Positions 229-57,967 of a stretch of 64,000 bases of DNA are shown here, piece by piece. The stretch's first letter is position 1; each line of letters opens with the position of its first letter. Source of the stretch: Rhodosorus marinus CCMP1338 (Eukaryota; Plantae; Rhodophyta). The notes beneath the pieces are model-generated. The model searched no databases, was not told the DNA's origin, and saw nothing but the letters and a program-made list of their open reading frames with translations. The stretch is from assembly GCA_029953675.1 (NCBI GenBank), contig JAMWBK010000001.1:1612001-1676000 (forward strand). Direction: 5' to 3'. Made by a program: the position numbers and the translations under genes.

Positions 229-1245
229 ACACAGTCTTTCAGAGCTACTAAGGTACAGATGGCGCGGTGAAAGGAATCTGCCCGGCGTTGCAACTTCAGG
301 ATGCCAGCGCGGCAACACCCGCAGTACGACGAGGTTAAGGGCAAGCTGATCTGCAAGCATTACGACTTACCGGTAAGAAACAAAGTTGAGCACCTCAAGA
401 AGCACCTGCAGAAGTGCGATCGGTACATGATCGCAGATGACGCTCCCACGGGCAGCAGACGATCCGGTTCAACTCCAGAGTCCGGCCGTTCAAGCGTCGC
501 TTCGAAAAGCGGAAAGCGCGAGGGAGCAGACATAAGTGACGATTGTCCGACGATTAAGAAAGGAAAGCAAGCAGAAGAGCTCGACGTTAAGCTCGCGAGG
601 ATTATGGCGGAAAGAAACCTACCGTTTCGGCTGGTTGAAGACCCAGAGGTGCGAAGGTAGGTTTGAGAACTCGTACTCGGGCTAGTCGCGTCCAGTATTC
701 TGTGCAACAGGCGCTGAGTTTCACAGTGTTTTTTCCAGTTTCTTTAAGATCTTAGGATATCGGCTACCCAAAAGGAGAGATATCCCGGAGCTGATCGAGC
801 TCAAGTAGCTCTTCTATCCATACCATGTGGATCCCTTGTCCAATTCGAAATACTCCTTGAACCCTCAGCTTTAAGACGGTAGGGGGAGGTGCTAAGGCTT
901 TGTAGAGGCTTCTATAGATGCTTCACCTCCTCCGCAGAACTGCTTCCCCATCCTGTCAATGGACCGTTTTCCAATCCCCCAAGCTTCCCTCACTGTTGTT
1001 CTTGGTCTGCGGCGCTCCCCTCAAAGTAGGATTCTGAAAATCAAAAACCCACCATTGCCCTCGAAAACAGATGCATTTTCCAGTTACCCACTAAAAACCG
1101 GGACAGTCATTAAAATTTCATTGCCCACCAACCAAATATTCGACGGTCGCCTATTGCACACTTATATTGCCCACTTATTACCCGCTTATTGCCCGGGCCC
1201 TCCTTAAACCCGTCTGTTTCCGCAAGTATACCCACTTCTGTAACC
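229..1245 (+). mobile_element. Internally deleted hAT-like DNA transposon fragment, copy 1 (BED-finger plus transposase N-terminus)
   Basis: ORF 301-660 contains LICKHYDLPVRNKVEHLKKHLQKC (BED finger Cx2C..Hx3C with the second Cys changed to Tyr) and LARIMAERNLPFRLVEDPEVRR (hAT LPFxxVE motif). About 1 kb aligns by eye with 56820-57967 on the opposite strand. The right boundary is approximate. Confidence 0.7.
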
Positions 1246-1559
1246 CCAGACTATCGTAAGCAGCCAAAAACCCAACCCACTTGGCACAGCCCTACGCAAA
1301 ACATACCCTACCAACCCCCTGTCCAGGGATCTCATCTAAAAGCTAAAGTCTATCTAAACGAAATATTGGGAGATCATCGGGATCTTTCTCTAGTCCGGTT
1401 CAACTGTGCGCTGGAGAGATGTGCTTCTCGGTCATGTAGGTGCTTAGGCGCTGCCTGAAGAAATTCCACCCCGGCCTTACCCAGCCTTCCATACGTCTCT
1501 GGCAACGAACGGACTAGGATCACATCTTGTAACAGCGAACACTGTACTAAAGGAGTCCC

Positions 1560-3367: not shown

Positions 3368-5746
3368 CTACGCCGCTTCTAGTTTGTTCTCTACGATAAC
3401 CTCGCTGTCATTCAAACAATTGCTCCACTTTCCTGTTTTGGTGAAACTGTTCTGCAGAATGTCTGAATTAAAATTCTCCACAGTTCCATTCCTCCGGAGT
3501 TTCAAGCCGCCTCGCGGTAGTGAGAGTATCTCCAGCGCCTCAATTGATCGAGCTCGACTTAGAGCAACTACAATGTATCCACCGGAGGTCAAAAAATGGG
3601 ATTAGTACTAATTCTATGTATAGGTGCTGCAAAGTTAAGCAGCTGCATTTGGGCTCAACAAACCAATCCGGGTCAGTTCAGAAAACAAATTCCAATGCTT
3701 ACCATAAGCTTGCCCAAAATCGAAAGTTCCATCCAAGTTCACTTTGAGCCTGTCCAAAGTCATGCCCTGACTCTTGTGTACGGTTACAGCCCATGCTAGA
3801 GCTAGAGGTATTTGCAATCTGACGCAAGTACCAACACCGGGGATTTTCATGGTGAACTCCTCTGTTGACACCTCCTTACTCTGACCGTTCCGAAACCTCA
3901 CCACGGGGTTGCTAAATTGACAATAGCACAGAAGTAGCATATTAGCAGGTCATGTCTAGGACATCGATAAACAAAGAATGTTGACGCATGCCATTTACCC
4001 TGAATCCGCAAAACCTTGAACAACTCCCCTAGAACCATTGATCAGGTAAGCACCTCGTGTCTGCGAAAGGTTCTTCAAAAGCATCACTTGTGCTCCCTCC
4101 TTAAGAGCGAGTTTCGACGAGGCGCGACAGTTTTTCCAAAACGCATGCGCTTTGAGAGCTTTCTCATGCTTTACCTCCGACTCCTTCGGGCCGAATGGGT
4201 AGATGCGGTCTTTTGCTAAAAATTTTACTTCACGAGATGCAATTTGTTGCAGCTTTCGAAGATTGTGCCTATCGACAGATACATTGTGGCAGTAGAGAAT
4301 CGTGGACTCAATCCCATCGACTGGCTTCGGTAGCTGCCTTCGAACCTGACGTAGCAAATTTTGAAACCTGGGAGTGTCCTCCCCTCTTCTCAAATCCGCC
4401 AGGGCGAGAACAAACTCTGAATCCCTCTGCCGATGAACCTCTGCCAAGTCCACAACCTTCAGGTCACCACTCTGCCACGCATTGCTTTCGAAAGCGTAAC
4501 CAAGGTTGTTGAAAGCCTTGGCACTCTTCACAACTTTTGATTGCCTAACAGGCGGCAGCTGGTAAAAGTCACCAGAGAAAAGCACTTGAAGACCGCCAAA
4601 GGGTTTGGGGGAATGACGAACCTCCTTCAACTCCTGGTCGATATAGTCCAGCATCTCACCAGAAAGCATTGATACTTCATCGATAATTAGCAAGTCAAGT
4701 CTTTGCAGTCTTCTACTATTCGACTTGTTACGCATCTTCCCGAAGTCCTTCCTCTCGTATGGAACGCCAATTCCCAGTAGAGAATGCAGAGTGCACCCAT
4801 CCACGTTTTCGGCTGCAACACCTGTCATAGCGCAAACTCCCACGTTTTCCTCTCCAAGGATATTTGTCATTTGCCATATAATCTCCCTAAGTACCGTGGA
4901 CTTTCCCGTTCCTCCGCAACCAGTGAGAAACAAATTGTGCCCTTTTCGCACGTGCTCAATGGCTGCCATCTGCTCCTCGTTAAACTGTACTCCAGGCTGC
5001 GAGTCGCATGCCGGGTGCAACTCGGCCGAGAGCTTTGACGGCATGGTTTGCGACTCCTCGAGCCCAACCCCGCCGGTGAATTGCGCCATTGAGAAGAACT
5101 CCCTATCCCCGTTAGAGGAATCCTGGGTGGGCTCTTTTGGCTGGACAGCAAAAAGACTCTCTTTTTTCAATGATGACGCAGAGCCCGGACGTGCGAGCTC
5201 GCCCGACACCAAGGAACGATGATGAGATGGTTCGGGGCCCAATGGTTGCGCGTTCTCACACTGTGGTGCTCCGTCAAGCCTGTGCTTGGTTTCCTCCACA
5301 GAGCTACACGAATACCCTTTTGCATTTCGATGTCCTCTCACCTGCAAAGAGAAGAACCATCAGATCAGGAGTAGAAGAGGGAGTTCAACCGGGACTCCAA
5401 AAGGGACACGACACGCTAGCCAACACAATCAGGTCAGGTGAAATGAAAGGGAATGTATAGCCCACGCTAAAGTGACAATCCAAACGGTAGAGCAAGCGGG
5501 ATACTAAAGGAATCCAAACTAGGGTTAGCATCGTTAGCGCACTCCATCTTGCCTGCTGTTCAGATTCCTCCCACGAGCAGCCAACGCCACGTTTCCTCCC
5601 GTTCCGCGCGACGAATACAGGGTCCGACATAGGTTGGTAGAAATCGAGCGAGGATCATCCAGCGGAGCAAATGAACCGGAACGGGATTTACCCGAATTAC
5701 CTAGAATTCGCAAGCAGGAACTCTTCCCCAGAACACGGCTGAGCAT
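3368..5746 (-). CDS. PIF1: PIF1-family 5'-3' DNA helicase (multi-exon)
   Basis: Motifs LFLTGCGGTGKS (Walker A), IIDEVSM, PFGGLQVLFSGDFYQLPPV, LINGSRGVV, QIPLALAWAVTVHKSQGMTL and GQAY/VALSRAR (split by a phase-1 intron). The first exon (ATG 5746) joins in frame through a proposed intron at 5542-5342; that exon is less certain. Confidence 0.92.
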
Positions 5747-33280: not shown

Positions 33281-33409
33281 GGAAGTGGAGAAGACATCGG
33301 AACCAAAACAGGAGGTGCACTTCCCGCCATGACTAGCACTAGAAACCCCAGACTGGAAGTGGAGAAGACATCGCGACCAAAACAGGAGATGCACTTCCCG
33401 CCATGACTA
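33281..33409. repeat. Two 55-bp direct repeats (period 74 bp), each containing a GGAAGTG...CACTTCC inverted pair
   Basis: 33281-33335 and 33355-33409 both read ggaagtggagaagacatcg..accaaaacaggag.tgcacttcccgccatgacta, with 3 mismatches. Confidence 0.9.
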
Positions 33410-44570: not shown

Positions 44571-47500
44571 TCATGAAGTAGACAACACCTTCGCACCAGC
44601 GATCTCAAGTTGGGATTTTGATTTTTCTCGCCGCAGGTGCTCGTCGTTGAACCATGTTTTCCAACGTTGAGCGCTGGCTGATTCATCTGGCTTGCGCTTC
44701 TTCGCCGGCCTCCACTGGATTGCTGCGTCCTCCTTTCCCCCAGTGAACATCAGTCGACCACCATTAACAATTCTCATTTCAAGCCTATTTAACATCTCGC
44801 AGCTCAGCGTCATCTCCTCCCGTTTCCGCTTGGAAATCTTCGACTCGCAGCTCTTCAACCACCGAGAACTCAAGCTCTCGTCTCCCTCGCTCTCGTTGTC
44901 AGTACTCTGTGCACTAGCTTCCAAGGTCCTACCGAAACCGGCATTATCAACACCAAGAAGATGCATACGTACGAGGGAACGGTTTCCCGCGGTTCCGAGT
45001 CGGTACATGGACACCTTCCTCTCCTCCGCAAACCGATTACTCGCAGCACGATGATAGATTTCCTCTGAACTTTCACTGCGGACTCCTTGAATTGCATCGT
45101 GCTCGAAGAACAACCTTGCTAAGTAGTTGGAAATCGAGTTGCTGTTGTGTCCAAAAATGTGAATGACCTGTCAAGAGCAACGAGACAATCCCGTTTTCAG
45201 TCATCGGCACGTCCATATCAAGAAACGGGTGATGCCAATTCCTCTATTGGATCTCTCCCATCTCACCTGCTTTCCAAGCTTTCTAACGTGCTTGTCCATC
45301 GTGAACAAGAGATAGGAAGATGTTCCAAGGATGCCACGACATCTATCATCATAGCGGACAGCATCTATACTATTGTTCAGAAGGCCTGTCAGCGACAGTA
45401 CGTATTCCCTGAAGAGATATTTGGGATCGGTTGACGTCAACCGAAATGCGCCGTTCCCATATTCTGCAGTCTGCCCTAAGGAGGACGGTCTACTCATGAA
45501 TTCAATAAGGGAGGATTAGACAAAGAAATAAATGACCTTCAGCTTGCTGCCACCCAGGAATGTTTCTCGTAACCATCTTCCCAAGCAAAAGACTTACAAT
45601 TTTTTCATTCCGTGTCCGCCAGATCCGTTCTCTGCTAGTTCATTTCGCTTTCTGCGTCTTTTCTCTTCTTCACTTTTCTCTACAGCCATTCTCCACGCGG
45701 CGCTCAGCCTTTCATGCACGATGTGTCCAAATCTGAATAATATATAGAGCATTTCATCGCAGTACATCACCATATCCTCGCGCAACCGCTTCTGACTATT
45801 CGAGTCCGCATCACCAGTAGCGAGTTGCGCCACAGGGATATCCTCCCCGAACCGGGGTTTCAATGTCGCCATTACATCGTCAAGATCAACATCTGAGAAT
45901 CCACGACCCTTCAGCCCAAACACGGAGCCAACCAGATGCCGGTACGCAGCAGTCATTCTGGCAGCCTCCGTTGAGTTCGAGCACTCGGTCGCCAGAAGGA
46001 GCTCAACAATATCCGCGATTTCCGAGTGCATTTCTGGTTGTGTATACGGCAACTCGATGCAGTTCGGCATAATCTTCGATACACGTGCCGCGGCTGAACC
46101 GTACAGCGAAAACCCGTCCAAGCCCGAGCCTTGCGAATGAATGGTATTGCTCGGGTTCGTATGACTGGAGCTAGCGTTGCTATGACCATCATTTGATCCC
46201 CGGGACCCGCCGTTCGCCTTGGCAGGATTCGCTGAAATCTCCTGGATCATGCTTTTCGCGCTCAGCTCCTTCTTATCAGCCTGCTTAAAGTAAAATGAAC
46301 GATGATCCAGAGACTTGTAGTAGTTCTTTTCGCACACTTCCCTCCAAATCTTGTTCATTTCAATTCTTGCTTTCCGCCACTGCTCGTCTTTTTGTTTTAA
46401 CCGCGCAAGAACAACCGGAATGGCCACAGATGGATTCAACTTAACCTGCTCAATAATATCGGATCCGTGGTCTCCGTAGATCCTTTCGATCGCTCGCACA
46501 TGCACGGGGCTAAGGGCCTCATCGGCTAAGGCGTGTCTCTTCATTTCGTCCGATGAAAGCTTTCCGATCGTTGCTGCAATAGGCTCCAGCTTGGCAATTA
46601 TAGCCGCGTTGGTTTCGATAACCATGTCGAGCTCATATCGATCGTCCTCACACCGGAAAAGATTGTCCTCGAATTGGTTCTTTCGAAAATGCTTGAATGA
46701 GTAGTCCTCACTGCCCATGGGCACACTAACCCAATAATCGTTGAGAGTTCTCTTCTCAATCTCAGATCTTCCCCTGCACACGGGAACCACGAAGTCCGGG
46801 GGAAGTCGCTTATACGACTCAGTACAGGTGATAGTACTCTCTGCGGCAATTTCCGACATAGGCCGGGACTTGTATTGCTGGTGCTTAGCCGACATCGTCT
46901 TCGATGCCACCGGTGAGCTCTCGAAAGCTGTATCGTCCCTCTGATCACTTTCCTCGTCCCCGAAGCGTGAAGTTGAACTCGTAGAGTACGACAGAGCATC
47001 CTGAACTCGGGATTCGTTCAAACCGCGGACAGCATCAGCTCCGTACGCTGAGCTGCTAGCCACGGCTCCGCTGTTGGTCATCAAATCAAGGCTGGACGGA
47101 GGTTGATCAGAGCCTGGCATTCCTGCGGAGGCATCTAAAAAGGCCCTGAACGCTTCCCGCAGACTTGGTCTTCCCTGGAACAGTTCTTCAGCCAGCATCA
47201 TTAGCTCTTGTCTAGTAATTATTTCCCTGGAGAACAAGGAGAGGCACTTAATAAACTCCTGGTACAAGTGCGTTCCAGACTGCCCCACTCGCTCCCTAAT
47301 GTCATCGAACAGCTTGACTTCATCACTTTCTCTTTGTGACATCGGCCCCTGAATGAAATCAACTGGTTTGTTCCCTGAGGCATCGAGCGCTCCGTGGCCA
47401 GACAACAATCCAGTTCCGCTAGACTGCCGCCGCGGAGAATTTTCACCTCGTTGCGAGGGGCGCAACATTGGAGGCGGCCCTGGCGGCTGCATTTTCATGG

Positions 47501-50500
47501 GTAACCGTGACTGACCAGTAATTCCAACACTCGCATTAGAACCGGACTGTATCACTGCCCCGGGTGACCTCGACGGGGGTGTGGGTCCAAGCTGTCCACT
47601 AGGAGATTGGGCTGGAACTTTGCCTTGAATGACGTGCTGATGCCCAGAGGCCGGAGGGCCTTGTCCTGCCATTCCCATTCGCACACCAGAACCGCGCGAG
47701 CCCGCCATCGCATCCTTGCCATCGCTGGCAGACGCTCGCTTACGTTTCGACGGTGGACCTTTTGAGGGCTTGCTTCTTGGAGGGGTGGACAATGGAGCGG
47801 AAGAAGATGTAATAGCACCCTTAGGCACCCTGCCAAAGGCGGGGGGTGTACCTCCGGTCCCATGCACAGGAGACTTGGGGCCTGCTCGCCTATCCCCGGC
47901 ATCAGCAGTGTGAGGAGACGAATCCGGGAGAAACCGCTTAAACTCCTCGAGCAAATCCGGATCATCCTTGAAAAGCTCCTGCACTTGTGCGTAGACCTCT
48001 TTGATTGACTTCTGGTCCTTTTGATAGTTCTGCAATATTTCCAAAAATTGCTTGTACACCTCCTCGTGCTCCCGAAAACGACCTTTGATCTTGTTCACGT
48101 AACTAATTGCGTTCTCAAACTCGAGATGGTTTCCAATCGGCTGTTCGCCCTGACTTCCCATAGCCCCTACTCCAATAAAGAACATGGGAGTGGACGAAAT
48201 TCTCAGTACGGGTTTCTAGTATCATCTCAGAATATGAGGAAGGGTGAGAACAAGGAGACGCCGCAGGCACAAGCCCGAACTCGCTCCATGTTGCCCATTC
48301 GCGTAGTTCCGCAAGACTGAAACCGAAAGTTCTGCAGCGAGGGAGGTGTCATTACCTTGTCCAATCGGTGGATACGGTCCCATACCTTTCCCTCCAGACA
48401 TCATCGTTCCTTGGCCTGGGACGTTCATCATTGGACCTCTGTTTCGCCCAGCCATCTGGGAAGGCCCGCCATGCCCTTCAGCAACCGCTCCAAGCGCAAC
48501 ACCTGCTGAGTGAGGCCCTCCGCCATTTTGAAAAACATTCCCCGAGCCCATTATAGCACTACCCCTCTGCTGCTGTCGCTGTTGTTGACCATGAGGTCCC
48601 GGCGACAATCGCGTCTGTCCCATCGCCATCGAGTTGTCCGCTGGGAACTGAGCCATCCCCATCGCACCCCTGGACCCGTTAGGATTCTGAGACTGCGCAC
48701 CTAGCGTCGTCTTTCCACCTCCCGGTGACGTTCGTCTCTGCTGCGATGTCATATTCGAGCTCGACGAGGGGCCTCGAAGCTTTTCCATTCCTGCGCCGAG
48801 CGGATCCTGAGGCCCTGCCTGTAGTTGGGATGACATCGAGGATGCGCAACTGGGCTCTTAGTATCTAAAATGAGTCTCTGACCACTTCCGTGAGGTCCAG
48901 AAGCTGGTCGAAGATTGTAGCATATGCCTTGTTAATTGGTTTTGGACTCTCTGCGCAAACGAACCTGAGAATTATGCTCTGGGGGTCCGGGTGAGCGAGA
49001 GCGCTGCTTATTGGCCTGTTTATGCGAATGTCGCTGCTGTTTCCCTTGCGAGGCCTGGGATTGCTGCTGTTTCTGCGCATGCTGTCTCGGCGTGTGGACG
49101 TGAATGTCTCGGTCAAGTCCAAGATTTTGACCGCTTTGTCCGTGATGAACAGCTAACAAATTCTGCGCCTCCCTTGCCGGGAATGTTGGAGCGGGCCCGG
49201 CAGCGGCTGAGCCTTCTTGGGCAACCTTTCCTCTGCCCTTTCCTCCCGCACCTCTAGGCTTCTGCCCACCGATGCTCGGCTCAGCAGGGAGACCGGCGTT
49301 GTTCTGATGTGCAAAGACAAAAAAGAAGAAAGCACGAAATTCGACTTTCGATTCAGAATCGCTTGTGGTCGCCGGAATGACAACGGCATGCTCCTGAGCA
49401 ACCAAGCTCTACAATCGTGAAGCAGTAGTCCTAACTTCAGGTAACACAAGGCTCACCTTGCTCATATACCGCGGCTTCTTGTCATACGACTGATTGTCAC
49501 CGCCTCCGTCGAAGGAAACTCCTGAAGCATCGTGCGAAGGGCCAAGGCCAGAGCCTTTGCTACCATAGGATGCACCCGTCTGCTTTCCCCCACTAGCCTC
49601 AGTACTGCTTGCCCCTCCTCCGATGGGAGTTTTCTTAAAGCCATGTGGAGTCGAATACGTTGTTGTGCACTGTCCGGTAATTGGGTCGTCGCGCATACCC
49701 TGAATTCTGTACCCCGGAGGCAGGAACGTGTCGAAAGCAAGGATCAGCTCGGTGTGCCCCCTGAACAGCTGAGAGACTCGTTCGATGACTCGATTTGTGT
49801 CAATTAGCTGTGCCTTGAATTCCTTCATGATATCCAGGAATTGATTGTACACGCTTGGCTTGTCATGGAAACGGCTTTTTACGTGTTCGAGGTACGCTAA
49901 AGCGTCTTCAACCTGTAGCTCAACACGAGACGGAGATGAGCTCAGCACTAATCCTTGGGAGGAATCACAAGTTCAAACAACCCGTAGAAAAACGATCTAT
50001 ACTTTGCCGATATAACACGTACCCTTAGCAGTCGGCGATCGCTGTTGGGAGGGTAGTTCCCTTGTTCCACTCTCGTGCTTGGAGAACTCACTGGGGGAGA
50101 TGGTGATGGTAGAGTTGCTCCGACGTTCGATCCCACTGCGCTATTAAAGCCTCTTCCCCCCTGGGAAACCTGCAAGTACATTTCACACCAACCATTAGCT
50201 CATGGTAAAGGCTTACGCGAGGGACGAATTCAAGATTTATTTGCTCAAAAAGCTGCTCACCCTCCCAGAGTGCTCCTGATTTCCTTGCGGGAATGGAGGG
50301 CCCGCGGGATTCGCAACAGGCGCAAGAGGCACGGCTCCCGACTCCCCAACTTCACCAGCACGCGGCTGACGGGTCACATGAGGAAAAGCTCCAGCGCTTA
50401 GTCCAGGAAGCGGTGCTTGAGCCTGCTCCGAGCCTCGCCGAGCGATCCCAGAGCCGCGCGATTCCGCGTCGATTCGATCGGTTACCTTAACCGCTTTCCC

Positions 50501-52296
50501 GTCAGCGGGGTTAACTCGGCCAATGCTCACCGCCGGTACGTTCTGTACTAACGAAACTGGAGGGAGATTTGCGCTCTGCGTATCCTTCCCTTGGGGTTCA
50601 TCAGCTTTGGGAGCATATCCATCTACAAAGTGCTTGCCTTGTTGCTTCTCATGATCCTCGGAGAGGGGAGCTTGAGTCCTCTTTGTCTGCGCTTGCGTCG
50701 TCTGCATTCCTCTCGCCGACCCTGGTTCGTCATGCTCCCCTCTTTGCTTGGCACCACCCCAGTGCTGCTTTACGGCTACAGTTTGCGGTCCGGGCAACGA
50801 CTGAGCACCCGGTAGCGCTTGTGCACCAGGAAGAGACTGTGCCCCTGGAAGCGCCTGGGAACCCGGAAGTGGTTGATTTCTAACCAGAGATTGTCCACCT
50901 GAAAGCCTTTGCACAGGTGAAAAGCTTTGAGGCCCTTTCGCCATATGACCGTCGCGTTCGGTTGGTAGAGTTGATGGAACTGGCAGAGACTGCGCGCTAG
51001 GCAAGGGCTTCGCCTCTGTAAGCGATTGCAGTTTCGGGGGACCAGGCAACGCCTGGGATCCGGGTAAGCCCGGACCACGTGGAAGTGTATGCGCTCCCGG
51101 CAAACGGGGTCCTCCTTTTAGCGTCTGAGGACTAGGCAAGGTGTGGGCTCCTGGCAAACTCCGAGGGCCCTCAGCCTTGAAGCCATCCTGCGGAGTGGAC
51201 CCGTCATCAAAAGCTGCACCGCTCTTGCTCATGTCAATTTCGGGTGCTGCAGATACCATGCTCTCCTTTGCGTTCGACAGTCCGTCCGATATCGATTCCG
51301 TGCGCGTTCCCCTCGAACCGATCACCCTGTCGCTATTGATTGCACCAGACCTACCCTCCTCGCCTGAAAACCGAGTCACGTTATCCTCGCCAGCTGGTTT
51401 GGAACTGGTTCTACCTGCCCAATCACTTGATCCAATTAGCGATTCCGCCTGCCCTTTACCCTGAAATGTATCCTTCTTGTGCGTAGGCTGCCTCGAGCCA
51501 GTATGCTGTTTAGCCACGTCCTGAAGATTTGAATGATGACGAGCTTCATTCTCTTTTAATCTATGTACAAGTGGACTCTCCCCAACCGCTCCCAGAGCGC
51601 CCTTTGACACGTCTAGCGCTTTGTCACGGGAGGACTCCTTCAAGTCATCACTACCTCCACCTCCCTCACCCCTACTCCGAGCAAAATGCCCACCGGCAAC
51701 TGCACTCCCTACAACAGGACCGCGAGCGCTCGCAACATCACCGCTTAGGTATGATCCGTTTGAGCTACCGAAACCTTTCCGAGTAGCACTGCGCCCGTCC
51801 GATTCCCGGCTTGGAGACACTTTTCCAGGCCTCTTTTGAGCAGATTTTCCGTCGCTCACCACACGGGGCTTTGGCTCCATGCTCAGCTCCTGAGCCTTTG
51901 CTTCCGCTTTCCCGGAGCTCCTCTCGCTCTTCACTGCTGCCTCTTCCCTTCGATCGAGATTGTCATCAGTCTCTTCTCTCGAGGCACTAGGACGCGGCCT
52001 TTCAAGTATTCGGGAGTCACCATCAGCTGGCGCTGCTCTCGGTGGATCCTCGCGTTTGTGGATCGACTTATCCAGACCAGCTTGGTTTCCTTTATCAGTG
52101 GGAACTTCGGCTGAAGTGCTGGCCTGCCGCGGCGTTTCTGCTGTATTGGGTTCCGGTTCCGACCCACCGGTTCCTATCAATTCCGTAGAGAGTAACAATC
52201 GTGAGTTTTCAATCAGCTGGCCTAGACGTCATCGGGTTCGAGGAAGGCTCTGAAATCGGGAATACCTTTCTTCGCATTGTCAGAAACGGAGTCCAT
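44571..52296 (-). CDS. SIN3: SIN3 corepressor (PAH1-3, HDAC-interaction domain, C-terminal domain) with a very long N-terminal extension
   Basis: PAH1 [27 protein letters not shown]2 [26 protein letters not shown]3 [49 protein letters not shown], and C-terminal SYLLFTMDK. The upstream exons (52296-52266, ~52174-50251, ~50169-50023) splice in frame to DRRLLR|VEDAL. Confidence 0.9.
50780..51158 (-). repeat. Coding hexapeptide repeats LPG(A/S/P)(Q/H)(A/S/T) in the SIN3 N-terminal exon
   Basis: Five contiguous units [30 protein letters not shown] at 50780-50869, plus looser units (LPGAHT x2, [12 protein letters not shown]) up to ~51158. Confidence 0.85.
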
Positions 52297-55200: not shown

Positions 55201-56360
55201 ACCGAATGAATTTATTTATTCGGAGGCTAGAAGAGTAACCGAGGGGAGCAAAAGGGACTACCGAAGCTGTAAAAATCGCGCCCCTCCAGCACCAAGCAGC
55301 ATTCATTCGCCACAATAGAAAACTCAACCGGGTAAACAGCGAGGAAAGCCTAGATTTAGCGAAACCGCAACCTTTACTCGGCAGCTGCCTATTACAGCGC
55401 AGCACTTGCTCCATCACTGTCTAAGGGGAAAGGTCAGACTGACCCCGCTACCGGGGTCTTGCGCTAGGTTCAGAAGAACCCTAGAGCGGAGCATCAATAG
55501 CATAGCTGGTCTTCAAGTTGTTGGATCCTCTCATCACGTCGTTGGGTCGAAATGACTGGTCTTTTGAGTTCAGAATCCATTGGTAGATACGCAAAGGAAG
55601 GGTCTCCAAGCTAAAAAGCTCATGGACGTGGCAGCTGTCAACTGGAGCTATTACTGAGGCAAATCCGGTGTCAGTCCCGCACCTTTGAGTGTGTTCCACA
55701 CGAACTAACCAGGATCCTGTCGGCAACTCTTTCTAAGCATCCTGAACGTTGTTGAATTCGACGGCATCTTCGAAAACCGTATCGGTTTCTTTCGATACGA
55801 ATCCGTTTAGACGTACAAATCTAGTCCTGGCCTCTGCGGGCAGGGTCTCCGCGGTGTTCCGGGATGCGTTTTGCATTGGTAGCCTTGTTTGCACAGATTT
55901 TTACACTTTTTTCTACAGTTTTACAATGTTCTCATCAGTTTACGCACATTCTTGCATATATATTTTTTCGTATTATTCAGTGTGTTGCCGAGGAGTACTA
56001 GGTTATAGCAAAAAAACCAGCACAACTGGTGTTTGTTAGAGGGCAACCTGAATTTCTAGGATTCGATCAGTATCTACTCTTAGAGTCGTCTAAGCCAACG
56101 ACTCTGAGAGCATTATAAATGAAGGCCAATCCGAAAATCGCCAGCCACCGACAGGCCCAAACGAACTAAACATTTTTCAGTCAGCAGAAGCGAAAGTCGC
56201 TATAATCCGCCATCAACAACAAATCGACATCCGATGTTGATTGATCAAATCCGCGATATTGACTGAATTCGGTAGTCGATTTTGGCCCTCACCACTAGCG
56301 GGGCACAATTCCATCTGCGAATCGAGCAATTAGTTACGGAATGAGAACACCCGTCTTGAG

Positions 56361-56614
56361 GAATTACTCATCAACCAGAATAACAATCAAGCAATCCTCG
56401 GAACAGCACTCACAATACTCTTGGCACCACCTTCAGAATAATACCCTGACATGAATACGCCGAAGCAAGCTTCAACATAGATGAAAGTACCTATGGAGCC
56501 ACCTTCTGCACACTCACAGGACTGCATGGACTCCATGTAATAGCCGGAACACTCTACCTAGGCATAGCAATGACCAGAATCAATCTGCACACTTTAGCCA
56601 GAGAACGCCATATA
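56361..56614 (+). pseudogene. cox3: Fragment of cytochrome c oxidase subunit III, probable nuclear insertion of mitochondrial DNA (NUMT)
   Basis: Translates ELLINQNNNQAILGTALTIL, then after a 1-nt frameshift near 56420 LGTTFRIIP(TGA)HEYAEASFNIDESTYGATFCTLTGLHGLHVIAGTLYLGIAMTRINLHTLARERHI. This matches the cox3 stretch TILLGxxFT.Q..EY.EA.F.I.D..YGS.FF..TGFHGxHV..G. It has no start codon and ends before the YWHFVD motif. Confidence 0.85.
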
Positions 56615-56819
56615 GAATCCGTGCTTATAGCAAAATAGCTGTGTTTGTTCGGGATCGAGCGTTGAGGCCGCTGCAGCCGCTTCTTCATACCAGCTCATAT
56701 GCTGGTATGTTTCGCCGATAACCACCAATTAAATGAAATACCAGGTGTTTATTTCCCTCGGGACAACCTTACTAGTACTTGGGTCGTGCCGAGAGGGTCC
56801 GGCTTTTCGCCGTTTACGA

Positions 56820-57967
56820 CCAAGAAGTGGCTAACCCTAGGAAACTGGGGGGTTTTAAGGGAGGGGGGGGGGAAGGGGGCAAGAGTGGCAATATAGGCAA
56901 TAGGCAATTCCAATGCGTACGTGCAAAAGGCGGGCAGTGAAATTTTAATGGCGATCGCGGGTTTTTAGTGGTTACGAAGAAAACGCACCTGTTTTCAGAG
57001 GTACAGGGGGGTTTTTGATTTTCAGAATCGGAGTTCATGGGAGCCGGGCAGAGCACGAACCATAGTGGAGGCAGCTTGGGCGATTGGAAACGGTCTTTTG
57101 ATAGGATGGGGAAGCAGTTCTGTGGAGGTGGTGATACAGAGGACAAGGGATCCACAGGGTATGGGTAGAAGAGTTACTTGAGCTTGACTCGGGCTTGGGA
57201 ATTCTCCCCAGTTTGCAGATGATTAAATTTCTTGCAGGAAGTGGGATCATCGTTCTTCTCACAAGAGCATTGGAAGCCCGATTGGGCGAGCCATAAAGTA
57301 GAAGCGGAGGCAATAACTGCTAGCTTTACGTACGTGATGAGGGTTTGAACTTTTGAAGCCTTGATAAACTTTTCCTCCCCTCTCTTCTCTCTTTTGAAAG
57401 CGCTGCTATCAGCTCCGGGTTATCCGTCCTTTTGGGCACCTGATGTCCTAAGATCTTCAAAGAAACTGGAAAAAAACTGAAACTCAGCTCCTATTGGAAA
57501 GAAGGTACACGACTAGTAGGAGCACGAGTTCTCAATCCTACTTTCTCACCTCTGGGTCTTTCAACCTGCCGAACCAGTAGGTTCTAGTGAGGCCATTGTC
57601 CTTGCAAGCTTAACGTCGAGCTCTTCTACTTGCTTTCCTTTCTTGATGGGCGCGTAAACTCAGTTATGTCCGCTCCCTGGAGCTTTCGGCTTTTCCAAGC
57701 GAAGCTTGAACGGGCGGACTCTGGAGTTGAAGCGGATCTCCGGCTGGCTGCTGGAGCGTCACCTGCGATGATGTACCGATCGCACTTCTGCAGGTGCCTC
57801 TTGAGGCGTTCAAAATTGTTGCTTACCGGTAGGTCGCAATGCTTGCAGATCAGCGTAGCCTTGACCTCGTCGTACCGCGGATGCTTCTGCGTTGGCATCC
57901 GGAAGTTGCAACGCGCTGCAGTCCTTTCTCCTCGACATCTGTATCATAGTAGTCTGCTAGACTGTGT
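56820..57967 (-). mobile_element. Internally deleted hAT-like fragment, copy 2 (inverted relative to copy 1)
   Basis: LICKHCDLPVSNNFERLKRHLQKC (intact BED Cx2C..Hx3C). Colinear similarity to 229-1245 including the non-coding part, with a ~200-bp insertion at ~57200-57400. Confidence 0.7.

Follow-up and report, generated by a model that had tools for sequence, protein, structure and literature searches.

Mitochondrial DNA is known to be captured in nuclear chromosomes at repaired double-strand breaks, and end joining at such breaks is an established route to the resulting inserts (NUMTs). The closest described system is that of the red alga Rhodosorus marinus itself. Lee et al. (2023; Nat Commun 14:3363, PMC10250338) deposited the nuclear genome of this species as a Nanopore-based assembly, and compared the complete mitogenome with it by BLASTn. 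NUMTs proved abundant: of the 14 red algal genomes compared, this one had the highest NUMT fraction. The abundance was ascribed to the copy number of the mitochondrial minicircles and to non-homologous end joining (NHEJ). The gene cox3 is still encoded on a minicircle in this species, at ~420 copies per copy of nuclear sdhB by qPCR (Lee et al., 2023). The study gives totals and length distributions but no individual loci, and its NUMTs are mainly non-coding DNA. In the literature searched beyond that paper, we found no mention of Rhodosorus NUMTs.

The locus described here is a single one from the same assembly (GCA_029953675.1). It belongs to the same feature class, fragments of the minicircular mitogenome lying within nuclear contigs, but it is derived from coding sequence. 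It lies on the 3.8-Mb nuclear contig JAMWBK010000001.1, within a stretch of 64,000 nucleotides that was analysed as a whole and is called the window (record coordinate = window coordinate + 1,612,000). Judged by its sequence, the segment 56367-56621 is very probably a genuine NUMT from the cox3 minicircle of R. marinus, persisting as a dead, non-coding fragment in the DNA of a nuclear chromosome. As such it is an ordinary dead insertion, of a class already described and in a genome already analysed (Lee et al., 2023); a 255-bp match at ~90% identity would pass the BLASTn threshold of that analysis.

The insert also resembles classical NUMTs (Lopez et al., 1994) in being a short internal fragment of an organelle gene, inactivated by a difference in genetic code and by indels, and residing in gene-poor, repeat-bearing DNA. 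It departs from them in its source, a multipartite mitogenome of minicircles whose coding strand is unusually rich in A and C and whose GC is elevated. Whereas NUMTs are usually AT-rich, this insert, at 45% GC, does not stand out from nuclear DNA of 49% GC, because of those very properties of the source. The features of the locus and its surroundings are these:

56050-56348 (+): upstream flank, mildly A/C-rich, with a 13-bp-stem hairpin at 56077-56110 and no detectable homology
56349-56366 (+): 5' junction zone, uncertain; TRLEEL against mitochondrial TRAHHE, two matches and then four mismatches in a row at the conserved AHH motif
56367-56621 (+): core of the probable NUMT, cox3-derived, 255 bp; codons 153-239 of 264, with 77 of 85 amino acids identical to mitochondrial COX3 of R. 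marinus (91%)
56426-56427 (+): 1-nt deletion between these positions; one A lost from GCA[A]CCACC (GCA ACC ACC), frame passing from +3 to +2, where the mitochondrial protein has LLATTF
56447-56449 (+): in-frame TGA directly 5' of HEY, aligned with Trp181 (IIQWHEY) of mitochondrial COX3; a stop in the nuclear code
56528-56583 (+): stretch matching R. marinus cox3-minicircle primers, 56528-56547 at 19 of 20 nt and 56562-56583 at 19 of 22 nt
56614-56615 (+): 6-nt deletion between these positions; two codons, Gln236-Ile237, gone relative to mitochondrial ATA CAG ATA GAA, flanked by ATA direct repeats
56781-57967 (-): nuclear repeat, called the hAT copy in the earlier note on this DNA, 71-82% identical to window 229-1292 (+); context, outside the NUMT

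The cox3 signature that the earlier note had picked out from the letters is indeed present. In a six-frame reading of 56050-56700 under mitochondrial code 4, two stretches join, ...LINQNNNQAILGTALTILLA in frame +3 and TTFRIIPWHEYAEASFNIDESTYGATFCTLTGLHGLHVIAGTLYLGIAMTRINLHTLARERHIES in frame +2. The signature peptide HEYAEASFNIDESTYGATFCTLTGLHGLHVIAGTLYLG lies in frame +2, which reads TTFRIIPWHEY... after the frameshift. The joined peptide matches the Pfam family COX3 (PF00510) at E = 5e-14; its score of 53.2 bits lies above the gathering cut-off of 23.8, and the match is confined to profile positions 157-230 of 258. Among PDB chains it matches mitochondrial and alpha-proteobacterial subunit III (best E = 3e-11). 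On these matches, the nuclear piece is homologous to the COX3 family as a fragment and not as a complete member. An Rfam search of the cox3 region gave no match.

The limits of the fragment are narrower than first thought. The earlier note had placed it at 56100-56620, but cox3 homology is demonstrable over 56367-56621 only, possibly from 56349. The core was bounded by tblastn under genetic code 4 with the COX3 protein P0284 and by codon-by-codon alignment, the 3' end being set by the primer rmar_cox3_out_F; the 5' boundary is not fixed to a single base. Since the four consecutive mismatches of 56349-56366 cluster at the conserved AHH motif, we treat this segment as a junction zone, and it is probably not cox3-derived.

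The source gene emerged from a profile search that included stylonematophycean sequences. The protein found, "cytochrome c oxidase subunit III [Rhodosorus marinus]" (P0284, 264 aa), is 83% identical to the conceptual peptide, and the next best match is 55% identical. When P0284 was compared with the window by tblastn under code 4, its residues 147-172 fell on 56349-56426 (frame +3) and residues 171-236 on 56420-56617 (frame +2), both at 85%, and there was no further match anywhere in the 64,000 nt. Codon-by-codon alignment raises the agreement to 91% from Leu153 onward. The fragment is closer to the mitogenome of its own host than to anything else: when the uninterrupted 62 aa were compared exhaustively, by HMMER, with 1.84 billion representative proteins, identity was at most 57% among the matches listed, and 52% for the top-scoring one. 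The next best named matches among those listed were COX3 of Chroothece mobilis and of Stylonema alsidii, both Stylonematophyceae. A word-indexed protein search with the fragment alone returned two distant cox3 proteins only (39-44%) and missed P0284, and a scan of JGI metagenomes gave nothing above 46% identity. The proposal of a NUMT from an unusually divergent stylonematophycean mitogenome is thus borne out. The description of the fragment as very divergent holds against cox3 of other organisms and fails against its own source gene. The best match, which according to the earlier note might have turned out bacterial or foreign, is the R. marinus mitochondrial protein.

One contig from the Logan collection (L002; SRR25569785_2449013, 983 bp) carries a full-length cox3 at 100-900, with several in-frame TGA codons for Trp. 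It was among the top matches of the exhaustive search; its cox3 is closest to stylonematophycean COX3 and is 52% identical to the NUMT peptide. As a minicircle of R. marinus it was ruled out, with only 77% identity over 44 nt. It is another stylonematophycean-like cox3, possibly a minicircle fragment of an unsampled relative.

At the DNA level, the source gene is represented by six primers within the gene on the cox3 minicircle, given in Supplementary Data 2 of Lee et al. (2023; PMC10250338). All six, translated under code 4, are exact stretches of P0284. Two of them agree with the nuclear fragment at 38 of 42 nt (~10% difference), and the DNA comparison covers these 42 nt. A third, rmar_cox3_out_F (ATA CAG ATA GAA TCC GCA GTA TG), exposes the 6-base loss between 56614 and 56615, and against it the homology stops after G56621, where the nuclear DNA has TGCTTATAGC and the gene has CAGTATG. 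Half of the eight amino-acid differences (four) cluster at residues 227-230, a segment variable among Stylonematophyceae, so that some of the divergence between nuclear and mitochondrial copies may have arisen on the mitochondrial side. A match to a cox2 qPCR primer at 56726-56745, with 4 mismatches, was set aside as chance: similar 4-mismatch matches occur elsewhere in the window, and the site has no extended COX2 similarity and no Pfam match.

The reading of TGA as tryptophan, suggested earlier for the codon just before HEY, agrees with the source gene in two places. At the protein level, the nuclear TGA aligns with W181 of P0284, a position where a mitochondrial residue other than Trp would have spoken against the suggestion. 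In the mitochondrial gene itself, the primer rmar_cox3_southern_F (CCC TGA CCC CTA CTA ACA) encodes PWPLLT, residues 15-20, and TGA there stands for Trp16.

The codon composition of the fragment had likewise been described as A/C-skewed and foreign to the nearby nuclear genes, and the counts agree. Third codon positions hold A 42, C 39, G 6 and T 13%, against G 27-35% and A 16-23% in five nuclear ORFs of the window. Overall the fragment has A.35, C.28, G.17 and T.20, and the sense strand of 74 published R. marinus gene primers (72 of them mitochondrial) has A.32, C.27, G.17 and T.24. GC at the three codon positions (GC1/GC2/GC3) is 48.8/41.7/45.2 in the fragment vs. 48.3/43.0/52.1 in published R. 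marinus cox3. The A+C richness of the cox3 piece puts it in the top 0.8% of equally long windows. The skew is the signature of the coding strand of the R. marinus mitogenome.

In sum, the nuclear copy is like the mitochondrial cox3 of R. marinus (P0284; its minicircle is among OK643888-OK643898) in protein sequence, codon bias and the use of TGA for Trp. Unlike that gene, it is truncated at both ends, frameshifted and short of two codons, and it carries replacements at two conserved residues, Q179P (Gln179 to Pro) and Y200C (Tyr200 to Cys). The frameshift, a loss of one nucleotide, had been noticed from the letters, as had the absence of the piece from the ORF track: no ORF longer than 49 aa in the ORF list covers the cox3 region. 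The piece would have no function, because it is internal to the gene, has neither a start codon nor a C-terminus, and contains a Trp codon that the nucleus would read as a stop.

The setting is nuclear. The fragment has nuclear genes and members of a nuclear repeat family to its left and right, in what is locally a gene-poor stretch of the contig. The window has a GC content of about 50% and includes genes for Sin3, Vps36/EAP30, a Na/solute symporter, a CHY-RING protein and a PIF1-like helicase. The symporter ORF ties the window to its contig: it includes, without a single residue changed, a 610-aa NCBI protein encoded on JAMWBK010000001.1, and it shares 94% identity with an R. marinus transcript (MMETSP0011). 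The nearest neighbor is the repeat, said in the earlier note to lie ~200 bp away; its edge facing the NUMT is at 56929 by strict alignment and at 56781 by sensitive alignment, i.e., 300 or 160 bp distant. Both copies of the repeat contain a CxxC...HxxxC zinc-finger ORF, at 301-660 (+) and 57626-57898 (-), followed by a ELDVKLARIMAERNLPFRLVEDPE motif. In Pfam this ORF reaches zf-C2HE at sub-threshold level only (26.1 bits vs. 30.1). The RepeatMasker table for the R. marinus genome lists one DNA/hAT-Tag1 family (Lee et al., 2023; PMC10250338), and the hAT label for the two-copy repeat is plausible, the Pfam match being sub-threshold. The stretch 56800-56885, past the NUMT and short of the strictly aligned portion of the repeat, is a purine- and G-rich run (GGGGGGTTTTAAGGGAGGGGGGGGGGAAGGGGGCAAGAG) with strong positive GC skew.

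Several other accounts of the cox3 piece can be weighed against a NUMT. That it is a functional or nascent nuclear cox3 produced by endosymbiotic gene transfer, or a CoxC/CyoC of foreign or bacterial origin that came in by horizontal transfer or contamination, has next to no probability. Nothing beyond the COX3 homology itself speaks for it. A nuclear gene would offer a complete ORF that can be read through in the nuclear code; the locus has codons 153-239 only, lacks a start codon and contains a frameshift and a TGA, while cox3 still resides on a minicircle. The alignment to R. marinus COX3 already refutes both ideas, and bacterial-type subunit III chains score far below the host protein. That genuine mitochondrial reads were misjoined into the nuclear contig is extremely improbable. 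Such a chimera is conceivable in a Nanopore-based assembly from reads in which minicircles outnumber nuclear DNA by a factor of hundreds. What argues against it is the distance of the segment from the present mitochondrial gene: ~10% of the DNA (4 of the 42 nt shared with primers), the 1-nt and 6-nt deletions, and 8 of 85 residues; moreover, it is only 255 bp long and internal to the gene, with non-mitochondrial sequence on both sides in a contig of 3.8 Mb. It is also very improbable that the adjacent hAT-like element, or another transposable element, carried the piece in, or that the piece is filler DNA from the repair of an excision break. The decayed repeated element at 160-300 bp makes one think of capture, but its other copy (229-1292) carries nothing cox3-like, the homology of the two copies ends 160 bp short of the NUMT, the hAT identity is unconfirmed by Pfam, and neither terminal inverted repeats nor a target-site duplication surround the cox3 fragment.

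A further account extends the NUMT reading without contradicting it: the insertion may span ~56050-56621, its left 300 bp being mitochondrial as well, a separate piece linked to that of cox3. Mosaic NUMTs of this kind are common in other organisms. The left piece could be a minicircle non-coding cassette, a constant region or part of another minicircle. The composition gives some reason to think so, as A/C richness begins near 56050 and the block 56100-56250, with 63% A+C, is in the top 2.6% of windows; the flank 56050-56366 as a whole, however, is only in the top 8-10% of equally long windows. The fold of 56050-56350 is more stable than that of 100 of 100 shuffles (z = -3.07), mainly through the hairpin at 56077-56110 (CTCTTAGAGTCGT / ACGACTCTGAGAG, 8-nt loop), and this too favors a mosaic. 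Homology does not help it: over 56050-56366 there is no cox3 match (tblastn, both strands), no Pfam match in six code-4 frames, no match to PDB chains (phmmer, three forward frames), no Rfam match at E <= 1, and no match to the 77 mitochondrial primers published for R. marinus. The near-palindrome reported earlier at ~56222-56242 does exist (at 56223), but at chance frequency, with seven as good in the window vs. 6.65 expected from shuffles. Finally, an exact 11-nt direct repeat, TTATAGCAAAA, occurs at 56003-56013 and 56625-56635, each copy followed a few bases on by GTGTTTGTT. The pair encloses the whole A/C-rich block together with the NUMT, and the second copy begins 4 nt past the end of the cox3 homology. 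This position suggests a duplicated target, but the repeat has no statistical significance: an equal score is reached in 158 of 2000 shuffles, and over shuffled and genomic control pairs alike the share is ~7-8%. As a target-site duplication, TTATAGCAAAA...GTGTTTGTT was rejected (p about 0.07). Taking both sides together, we regard a second mitochondrial piece on the left as possible but rather doubtful. The more specific version, a 570-bp mosaic that joins cox3 either to non-coding DNA of a minicircle (constant region or cassette) or to a minicircle variant that has since died out, is less likely again. If true, the mosaic would be a snapshot of a fast-evolving minicircular mitogenome as it stood ~10% divergence ago, and such dated nuclear "fossils" could polarize and calibrate the evolution of mitochondrial genes and constant regions in Stylonematophyceae, which is unusually rapid and raises their GC.

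For the NUMT proper, i.e., the cox3 core, a likely course can be sketched. A fragment of the very high-copy cox3 minicircle would have reached the nucleus, presumably as DNA rather than through an RNA intermediate, and would have been ligated into a chromosomal double-strand break by NHEJ. Thereafter, the 1-nt deletion, the 6-nt deletion of slippage type and ~10% substitutions would have accumulated. The fragment resembles R. marinus COX3 far more than it does other stylonematophycean COX3, and its entry into the nucleus therefore probably postdates the split of Rhodosorus from the other sampled genera. Those genera all already have minicircles, and the insertion would thus belong to the minicircle era; by the same comparison, the idea of a fossil from before the minicircles was rejected.

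A single small NUMT carries little weight alone, as the high NUMT load of this genome has been reported and explained by minicircle copy number. The locus is useful as a worked example of a nuclear assembly whose mitochondrial inserts are, very probably, real and diverged and not the product of chimeric joining. From the nuclear side, it also adds independent evidence for TGA as the Trp codon of the source gene at position 181. The mitogenome evolves too fast for comparison with ordinary outgroups, and this locus, taken with the remaining NUMTs of the genome, could help to polarize its substitutions.

Some other contents of the window may be recorded here. On the minus strand, a series of long ORFs runs from 45594 to 52198 (45594-48185, with Sin3 PAH and corepressor domains, 48222-48836, 48932-49405, 49409-49948, and 50237-52198). 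The series looks like one large multi-exon gene of the Sin3 family, whose N-terminal region is of low complexity and rich in proline and glycine. The PIF1-like helicase ORF at 3635-5347 (-) is 450 aa long (Pfam PIF1 E = 1.3e-35, plus a Pif1 2B domain), and the ORF 3635-3940 adjoining it resembles a helicase C-terminus; the helicase could be a cellular PIF1 or belong to a Helitron-type element. Comparison of the window with itself revealed two local tandem duplications of ~94% identity, 2275-2373 with 2462-2561 and 33281-33335 with 33355-33409.
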